A program made the position numbers and the translations under genes. The notes under the pieces were generated by a model that saw only the letters and a list, made by a program, of their open reading frames with translations, was not told the DNA's origin and did not search any database. A DNA stretch of 32,000 bases from Bigelowiella natans nucleomorph (taxonomy: Eukaryota; Protista; Cercozoa), in assembly GCA_000002455.1 (NCBI GenBank), contig DQ158857.1, positions 30,001-62,000 on the forward strand, read 5' to 3'. This document shows positions 9,102-15,589 of the stretch, piece after piece. The number at the start of each line of letters is the position of its first letter. Position 1 is the first letter of the stretch.

Positions 9102-9374
9102 ATGAGTGAATTATTAATTTGGATAACAAATAAAATGGGAGAAAAGTTTCAAATTATTTGCAAGTAATAGGTTTTTTTTAGATCGACTGATACAGTATTA
9201 GAGTTGAAGAAAATTATTGCTCTTTATAGAAATACCGACTGGAGACGAATGAATTTGATTAAAAAGTTTAAATTTTTAAATAGCTCCGTTTATTTAATAG
9301 ATTTTCTTACTTTAGAAGACTACGAAATTAATAATGAATCTTGTATAGAGTGTGTGGATTCATTAAATATGTAA
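9102..9374 (+). CDS. hub1: Ubiquitin-like splicing modifier Hub1/UBL5
   Basis: 18-nt introns at 9164-9181 and 9266-9283. Product ...NKMGEKFQIICKSTDTVLELKKIIA..TDWRRMNL..LTLEDYEI matches UBL5 (NDRLGKKV.VKC..DDTIGDLKKLIA..T.W...LGDYEIH). Confidence 0.88.
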
Positions 9375-9507: not shown

Positions 9508-9580
9508 TACTCTCAATGGGATTTGAACCCACGACTTGCGGTTCATAAGACCACCGCTCTACCATCTGAGCTATGAGAGC
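9508..9580 (-). tRNA. trnI-UAU: tRNA-Ile(UAU), intronless
   Basis: GCTCTCA TA GCTC-AGATGGTA-GAGC G GTGGT-CTTATGA-ACCGC AAGTC GTGGG-TTCAAAT-CCCAT TGAGAGT A. Confidence 0.95.
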
Positions 9581-9586
9581 ATTAAA

Positions 9587-9672
9587 TTCGAGTCCATCTC
9601 CTTAACCACTCGGACACAGACGCGTAGCCGCGCCTGACAGGATTCGAACCTGTGCGGTAAAAACCAATGGAT
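9587..9672 (-). tRNA. trnS-CGA: Circularly permuted tRNA-Ser(CGA)
   Basis: The 3' half (9672-9629: A TCCAT TGGTTTTTACCG C ACAGG-TTCGAAT-CCTGT CAGGCGC G) precedes a 5-nt linker GCTAC and the 5' half (9623-9587: GCGTCTG TG TCCGAGTGGTTAAGGA G ATGGA CT CGA A). Acceptor and anticodon stems pair fully; long variable arm and G73 fit Ser. Confidence 0.93.
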
Positions 9673-9920
9673 TAATCTTAACTATTACAATTCTATTAAT
9701 ACATAGACTTCCATGATTAAGCATAGCTACACTATATGAAACTGCATTTCGTAGTCTTTTTTTTGAATTTCTCATTTGAGTGTTATATTGAGTTCGTATT
9801 AATACATTATCAATATGCCATACCATTTTGTTCTAGTTAATATATAAATTAAGTATAATATTTTTTCGATAACTTCACTTTAAATGTGAAAAATAAGTTG
9901 GAGTGCATAGTGGCTTTAAT

Positions 9921-10018
9921 AGCAGAAATCCTGCAAAAATTATGTCGTGGGTATATAAAATCCCTGAACTTAGATTAGTTAAAGAAAATTCAGAACAATT
10001 TCCCGACCAGGTAAGTAC
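9921..10018 (-). ncRNA. Miniaturised U1 snRNA
   Basis: 5' GTACTTACCTGG, closing helix GTCG (10007-10004) with CGAC (9947-9944), Sm site AATTTTTG (9941-9934) and terminal hairpin GCAG-GATTT-CTGC, in the canonical U1 order. Confidence 0.85.
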
Positions 10019-10071
10019 GATTTGTATATTATTGCTTTATATCAAATAATTTACATTTATTTAATACTTAG

Positions 10072-14829: not shown

Positions 14830-15524
14830 TTACATCATAAAATATGAATTGTAATATTTTAAAATAATTAAATGTTCTCTGAATAAAAAAATGGATTTAG
14901 AAAAATAGCTAAATTTATGTGATAATTGAAAAATATTTTTAAAATAAGAATATTTGTTTAGTAATAGTAAAAAAAAATTATCTTTCTTAATCGTCTTTTC
15001 AACTTTTTTCCAAATATAAAATTTTTGATTGTAGCTTAATTCTTTTTTTAAAAGAAGAATCCAGTCTATAGATAAACTCTAAAAAATACTGTAGAAACTT
15101 GGTTATTTCGTAAATATTTATTAAAAAATAAATAATTCGATAAAAAATATTTATTGTTTTTTAATGAAGAACTCGTTTTTAGAATTATAATGAACCTTTC
15201 TGAAAAGTGGGTAATAAATCTTTTAAGCAACAGTTGTTTTATAATTTTGTTATTTTTTTCAAAGTTCAAACGAAGAGTTATTATTCTATAATTGAGTTGT
15301 CTAATGAAGGATGCAGGCTCTATATACATTTTCATGTTGTTAGTTTCTTGATAATGATTGTTAAATTTAGTTTTTTCAAGTAGAAAATTATTTTTTTTGT
15401 ATTCTTTAATTAAAGTTTTGTTGTTTTGTCTTGATGGGTGAAAATTATTGAAAAATGTATAGTCTTTAATATTCAAATTAGCTATGCTGAATATATTATA
15501 TGATATCGGATTTAGCGGTATCAT
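14830..15524 (-). CDS. Hypothetical protein
   Basis: 152-codon ORF plus a downstream open frame ending at 14830. The intron junction is not resolved. Confidence 0.5.
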
Positions 15525-15589
15525 GGTGTAATGGTTATCACGTTAGTTTAACATGCTAAAGGTTTTTGGTTCGATTCCAAATGATACTA
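15517..15589 (+). tRNA. trnV-AAC: tRNA-Val(AAC)
   Basis: GGTATCA TG GTGTAATGGTTATCAC G TTAGT-TTAACAT-GCTAA AGGTT TTTGG-TTCGATT-CCAAA TGATACT A. Confidence 0.93.

Follow-up and report, generated by a model that had tools for sequence, protein, structure and literature searches.

At positions 9587–9672 of the DNA analysed here, a 32,000-nt stretch of chromosome 2 of the Bigelowiella natans nucleomorph (hereafter the window), the two halves of what resembles a serine tRNA lie on the minus strand in reverse order. The question raised by this locus is whether it is a genuine circularly permuted tRNA gene, a chance or assembly-made juxtaposition, or a gene in decay, and by what route an RNA encoded in this way could be matured. 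We conclude that the locus, C2:39587–39672 in whole-chromosome coordinates (C2, chromosome 2), is very probably the type II circularly permuted tRNA-Ser(CGA) gene already published for this nucleomorph, in which it has a single copy.

The nucleomorph assembly comprises 372,870 bp in three contigs, of which chromosome 1 accounts for 140,590 bp and chromosome 2 for 134,144 bp. Chromosomes 1 and 2 end in TCTAGGG repeats and have a GC content of about 28%, and the genes near the locus contain GT-AG introns of 18–20 nt. The published description gives 372,879 bp for the genome, 134,144 bp for chromosome 2 and a GC content of 28.5% (Suzuki 2015, PMC4494063).

Structure of the permuted gene

The arrangement set out in an earlier note on this DNA, including its coordinates, strand and permuted order, holds as described: read along the minus strand, a 3′ half of 44 nt is followed by the 5-nt linker GCTAC, which joins the acceptor ends, and then by a 5′ half of 37 nt (see the table). 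The 3′ half comprises the 3′ anticodon strand, a 13-nt variable arm, the T arm with the B box, the 3′ acceptor strand and the discriminator G73, and has no encoded CCA, while the 5′ half comprises the 5′ acceptor strand, the D arm with the A box, the 5′ anticodon strand, the CGA anticodon and A37. The B box (9650–9640) lies upstream of the A box (about 9616–9605), again as had been claimed, and the GC content inside the gene is 53%, compared with about 28% for the genome.

When the halves were swapped, ARAGORN called a tRNA-Ser(cga) of 81 nt, which confirms the predicted serine cloverleaf with its break at 37/38. All four stems are intact (acceptor 7 bp, anticodon 5 bp and T 5 bp among them), the long variable arm and G73 expected of a eukaryotic tRNA-Ser are present, and the eukaryal consensus positions U8, G15:C48, G18G19, U33 and U54U55C56 are all matched. 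In the genomic order, ARAGORN and Rfam call only tRNA-Leu(UAG), tRNA-Ile(UAU) and tRNA-Val(AAC) within the window, in line with the expectation that standard finders miss such a gene, and a partial tRNA match at 9637–9698 reaches only 18.5 bits. A match of the locus to the Rfam family YrlA (E 0.12) was rejected as merely reflecting the T-arm/D-arm order. The permuted Ser(CGA) gene is thus a useful positive control, being missed by standard finders yet found from the raw sequence.

The 37-nt 5′ half ends in the anticodon followed by A. As an A stands at leader base −1 as well as at position 37, the same mature RNA would result from a cut at 36/37 or at 37/38. The sequence itself cannot separate the two, 37/38 being the canonical site and the one assigned in the literature.

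Table. Features of the permuted tRNA-Ser(CGA) locus and of the related tandems (window positions unless marked C2)
Feature	Position	Strand	Basis or remark
3′ half of tRNA-Ser(CGA), positions 38–73, 44 nt	9629..9672	-	sequence, ARAGORN call on swapped halves
5-nt intervening sequence GCTAC, loop closing the acceptor stem	9624..9628	-	sequence; length equals that in Table 1 of Soma 2014
5′ half of tRNA-Ser(CGA), positions 1–37, 37 nt	9587..9623	-	sequence, ARAGORN call on swapped halves
Leader, relaxed BHB-like junction	9673..9682	-	pairs with trailer (5 bp) and with U33/C34 (2 bp)
6-nt spacer TTTAAT, trailer of permuted Ser and 5′ leader of tRNA-Ile(UAU)	9581..9586	-	sequence
Intact tRNA-Ile(UAU), directly downstream	9508..9580	-	ARAGORN; Rfam 68.1 bits
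Ser(CGA)–Ile(UAU) tandem	9672-9508	-	6-nt spacer
Permuted tRNA-Ser(AGA)	C2:100342-100257	-	swap scan; 44+5+37 nt, 37/38, 81-nt product
Ser(AGA)–Tyr(GUA) tandem	C2:100342-100174	-	4-nt spacer
Intact Ser(GCU)–Cys(GCA) tandem	C2:24754-24915		7-nt spacer

When chromosomes 1 and 2 were scanned for 37/38-type junctions by swapping and rescoring, the hits were Ser(CGA), Ser(AGA) and a chimera of the latter with the neighbouring Tyr gene. As a control, these 275 kb were block-shuffled 20 times, and the 20 copies together gave one locus. With any junction position allowed (326,772 constructs), no third permuted tRNA was found on chromosomes 1 and 2, the other matches of that scan being rejected as reuse of an intact tRNA or as Ser(AGA)–Tyr joins. 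Contigs from three other public runs carry the locus in the same order, with identical letters and no joints, and this letter-for-letter agreement led us to reject sequencing or assembly error as a cause either of the permutation or of the weak bulge-helix-bulge (BHB) junction described below. A 74-codon open reading frame on the minus strand (9826–9602), which runs through the leader, the 3′ half and the linker, has almost no sense reads and was treated as chance.

The sister gene and the splice junction

The permuted Ser(AGA) gene is identical to Ser(CGA) at 60 of 81 positions, and the changes keep the stems. The linkers differ (AAATG in place of GCTAC), as do the spacers to the next tRNA, which measure 4 nt to Tyr(GUA) behind Ser(AGA) and 6 nt to Ile(UAU) behind Ser(CGA). 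In the canonical register, Ser(AGA) forms a full hBH motif with all four H pairs and an h′ of 2 bp, whereas Ser(CGA) has the 5-bp h and the 3′ bulge but only two of the four H pairs (U33–A and C34–G, with position 32 unpaired). The pairing between leader and trailer suggested earlier is real, extending over 5 bp (trailer +2 to +6) as an h′ helix that lies one register off, and it is equally correct that a strict BHB cannot be drawn.

In the precursor fold, the linker closes the acceptor stem, and past the anticodon stem the leader is paired with the trailer. The permuted-tRNA family admits relaxed BHB motifs (hBH/BHL) and "no H" forms, and eukaryal endonucleases position themselves by the tRNA body. 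Because the central BHB helix of Ser(CGA) has only two of its four pairs, the cut site is most likely set by the distance that the eukaryal enzyme measures from the body of the tRNA, together with the 5-bp clamp of leader and trailer.

Tandem arrangement and transcription

The A and B boxes of the permuted Ser(CGA) gene are unusable in their normal order for transcription. Since TFIIIC places the start some 20 nt ahead of an A box, a promoter "borrowed" from tRNA-Ile was rejected: by this geometry, the start would fall within the permuted gene. An upstream AT-rich promoter has been proposed in the literature for permuted genes; in DNA that is 75% AT, a promoter of this kind cannot be judged. 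The nucleomorph has three genes of the RPB2 family (not typed individually), as expected for Pol I–III.

The tRNA-Ile(UAU) gene begins 6 nt past the Ser 5′ half, with no T4 between the two; past Ile, the next 88 nt are also free of T4. A T5 run (9663–9659, minus strand) in the variable arm/loop of the permuted gene could stop Pol III, and tRNA-Val(AAC) (15517–15589) contains an internal T5 run too. Most nucleomorph tRNA genes have no T4 within 30 nt downstream, and Pol III termination in the nucleomorph may depart from the usual T-run rule.

All three nucleomorph Ser genes lie 4–7 nt upstream of another tRNA gene, an arrangement for which no description was found in a literature search to which the primary 2010 paper did not belong. 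With 9 of its 22 tRNA genes in tandems, the genome has many such arrangements, and the Ser-led ones may reflect compaction only; the genes of each Ser-tRNA tandem are likely to be co-transcribed. It is possible, though on balance doubtful, that both permuted Ser genes form the first cistron of a tRNA–tRNA precursor in which the 4–6-nt spacer is at once splice trailer and RNase P leader, with Ser(CGA) being cut with almost no central BHB helix. If true, sharing the spacer would tie the two maturation routes together and set their order. No report of such coupling with a near helix-free cut was found in the literature searched, again exclusive of the 2010 paper.

RNA over the locus

Run X23, of which 6% was read, has the character of a poly(A) 3′-end library and is unsuited to tRNA. 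It is stranded, with first mates sense; the minus-strand gene rpl10A, with its poly(A) at 10021, served for calibration. No joints at the 37/38 junction or across the linker occur in it, and sense reads are nearly absent from both tRNAs. Plus-strand RNA is present at 7–59x with a poly(A) site at 9884, antisense to tRNA-Ile, to the permuted Ser gene and to the region upstream (about 9510–9884), and it is probably read-through of a plus-strand open reading frame ending near 9374. Antisense transcription is general in the B. natans nucleomorph (PMC6009652). Seven reads share an unexplained loose 5′ end at 9715.

Upstream of the permuted gene, the rpl10A mRNA ends at 10021 in a clean poly(A) site. 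At about 10017–9921 on the minus strand, there is a miniature U1 snRNA candidate missed by Rfam, with a 5′ splice-site motif, an Sm site and a short terminal hairpin, which matches the 102-nt B. natans U1 (PMC6461891). Run X18 (2025) differs from the assembly at 9996, 10019, 10021 and 10102, one of these positions being inside U1 and none in the tRNA genes, and probably represents another B. natans strain.

Serine codons and the tRNA set

In a rough, unannotated count over 38 long stop-free frames, the serine codons divide into UCU 30%, UCA 29%, AGU 19%, AGC 9%, UCC 7% and UCG 6%. Ser(AGA) with inosine reads UCU, UCC and, weakly, UCA, and the Ser(GCU) gene covers AGY. UCG, at about 6% of serine codons, needs the permuted Ser(CGA) or import. 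No tRNA-Ser(UGA) was found in the genome, although UCA makes up about 29% of serine codons, and its decoding must depend either on I34 wobble in the product of the permuted Ser(AGA) gene or on import of a tRNA.

An intact tRNA-Ser(CGA) elsewhere, which the earlier note had named as part of what would refute the permuted gene, was not found in the genome by Rfam or by D-arm and anticodon-arm patterns, the searches by which chromosome 3 was covered: the D-arm pattern with 3 mismatches allowed recovers only the two permuted genes, and the joined Ser(CGA) anticodon arm has no genome match with fewer than 3 mismatches. The three Rfam tRNAs of chromosome 3 are clustered and, at 71–74 nt, too short for Ser. 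Together, the 20 Rfam tRNAs of the genome and the two permuted genes make 22, as in the published table (Suzuki 2015, PMC4494063). Genes for Ala, Arg, Gly, Pro and Ser(UGA) tRNAs were not found among the typed tRNAs, which do not include those of chromosome 3, and it has been concluded in the literature that the compartment must import some tRNAs (PMC6461891).

A SerRS gene lies on chromosome 2 at C2:97428–97869, matching TIGR00414 in two exon pieces (E 3e-25 and 4e-15), and the compartment thus keeps a serine set. SerRS is also the only synthetase kept in the Guillardia nucleomorph (PMC4494062). The distance from the Ser(AGA)–Tyr pair downstream to the SerRS gene is about 2.3 kb.

Proposed maturation and its enzymes

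The established route for the permuted class leads from a linear precursor through an endonuclease cut to a circle that contains the linker, which is opened by RNase P and RNase Z and then receives CCA, and circles have been shown for the class in red and green algae. The earlier note had given this mechanism (circular intermediate, splicing endonuclease, ligase, RNase P/Z), correctly for permuted tRNAs. By analogy with the class (Soma 2007/2014, Maruyama 2010), Ser(CGA) would be made as one linear precursor consisting of leader, 3′ half, linker, 5′ half and trailer, which would probably start at an upstream AT-rich promoter and run on into tRNA-Ile(UAU), an RNase P cut at the Ile 5′ end then probably freeing the Ser precursor from Ile. 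The precursor would fold into a cloverleaf in which the 5-nt loop caps the acceptor stem and the anticodon loop stays open, the eukaryal tRNA splicing endonuclease would cut off leader and trailer at 37/38, and a ligase would join 37 to 38 to give an 86-nt circle. The linker would be removed by RNase P and RNase Z and CCA then added, and the nucleomorph-encoded SerRS would charge the product, which would be expected to read UCG.

Profile searches of the nucleomorph gave no match for the splicing endonuclease (PF01974, a weak search in an intron-rich genome), for the TFIIIC B-block (PF04182, likewise a weak search) or for PF07741 and PF02403. Such blanks carry little weight, as PF02403 missed the SerRS that is present. 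That this weak search detected no endonuclease gene in the nucleomorph fits import of a host-encoded enzyme. RNase P RNA has also been reported missing (PMC6461891), and we suggest that the enzymes needed for processing are probably encoded in the host nucleus and imported. Very short anticodon-loop introns of about 5–8 nt are seen in tRNA-Lys(CUU) (C2:69953–70029), tRNA-Tyr(GUA) (C2:100174–100252, miscalled as Phe by ARAGORN) and tRNA-Met(CAU) (C1:86068–86147, on chromosome 1), and these insertions mean that splicing activity is needed in the compartment anyway.

Alternative explanations

That tRNA-like pieces came together by chance, or that an ordinary tRNA-Ser gene was rearranged in the assembly, is so improbable that it can for practical purposes be dismissed: the same order and letters recur in the contigs of three other runs, the 20 shuffled copies gave one match, a second gene of identical build exists, and the gene is published. 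A very unlikely reading, yet one with more in its favor, is that Ser(CGA) is a true permuted tRNA by descent that is now decaying or weakly processed, with UCG read by a host-imported tRNA. Its BHB is weak beside that of the sister gene and it contains an internal T5; Ala, Arg, Gly, Pro and Ser(UGA) genes are missing among the typed tRNAs, and the literature infers import of some tRNAs (PMC6461891); both permuted genes went undetected in two Lotharella nucleomorphs; and a poly(A)+ transcript runs antisense across the locus. However, all four stems are intact, the gene keeps 53% GC in a genome of 28% GC, it is retained in Amorphochlora amoebiformis, and a run that departs from the assembly at three other places in the stretch agrees with it throughout the gene; as for the antisense transcript, such transcription is general in this nucleomorph (PMC6009652).

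A further alternative concerns only the route and leaves the identity of the gene untouched. Mature Ser(CGA) might be made without a dedicated Pol III transcript, either cut from read-through of the same-strand rpl10A/U1 snRNA or joined from its halves in trans without a circle. The inverted A and B boxes, which by normal TFIIIC geometry cannot set a start upstream of 9672, point in this direction, as do the blank (if weak) search for a TFIIIC B-block, the erratic T-run terminators and the low minus-strand coverage (0.4–2.5x) between U1 and the gene. On the other hand, the rpl10A mRNA ends cleanly at its poly(A) site at 10021, the three RPB2-family genes suggest that Pol III has been kept, circles have been shown for the class in red and green algae, and the hairpin precursor folds in cis. 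We therefore consider this route unlikely, and we favor a permuted tRNA-Ser(CGA) gene whose precursor would be spliced in cis through a circle.

Comparison with known systems

The permuted Ser(CGA) gene has been known since 2010 (Maruyama 2010, doi 10.1093/molbev/msp313, listed in Soma 2014), and the suspicion in the earlier note that it had already been described was well founded. Table 1 of Soma 2014 (PMC3978253), drawing on Maruyama 2010, lists Ser(AGA) and Ser(CGA) as the permuted genes of the B. natans nucleomorph, both of type II (37/38), intron-free and with an intervening sequence of 5 bp, and both appear again in Suzuki 2015. As Ser(CGA) is single copy, its entry in that table is the locus analysed here; genome, compartment, anticodon, junction and 5-bp linker are the same, and no difference was found. 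The same review calls the B. natans junctions hBH, whereas our register count gives Ser(CGA) only two of the four H pairs. Within the chlorarachniophytes, both permuted genes also occur in A. amoebiformis, and neither was detected in the two Lotharella nucleomorphs (Suzuki 2015, PMC4494063).

[quoted passage not shown] Their junctions lie at several positions (types I–IV) and some have introns, while the B. natans gene is broken at 37/38 and has none; the archaeal permuted tRNAs of T. pendens, moreover, have a 59/60 junction and an encoded CCA, which B. natans Ser(CGA) lacks. Closer counterparts are the nuclear permuted tRNA-Ser(CGA) genes of Ostreococcus and Micromonas (Soma 2014, Table 1), which are also of type II; likened here by their table entries, they have intervening sequences of 12–28 bp, compared with 5 bp in B. 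natans. According to a review, "some" of the nucleomorph and green-algal permuted genes have been shown to be expressed. The green-algal lineage to which Ostreococcus and Micromonas belong is the source of the B. natans nucleomorph, and a 2026 review (PMC13578239) cites the permuted genes in support of a green-algal ancestry for the nucleomorph of chlorarachniophytes.
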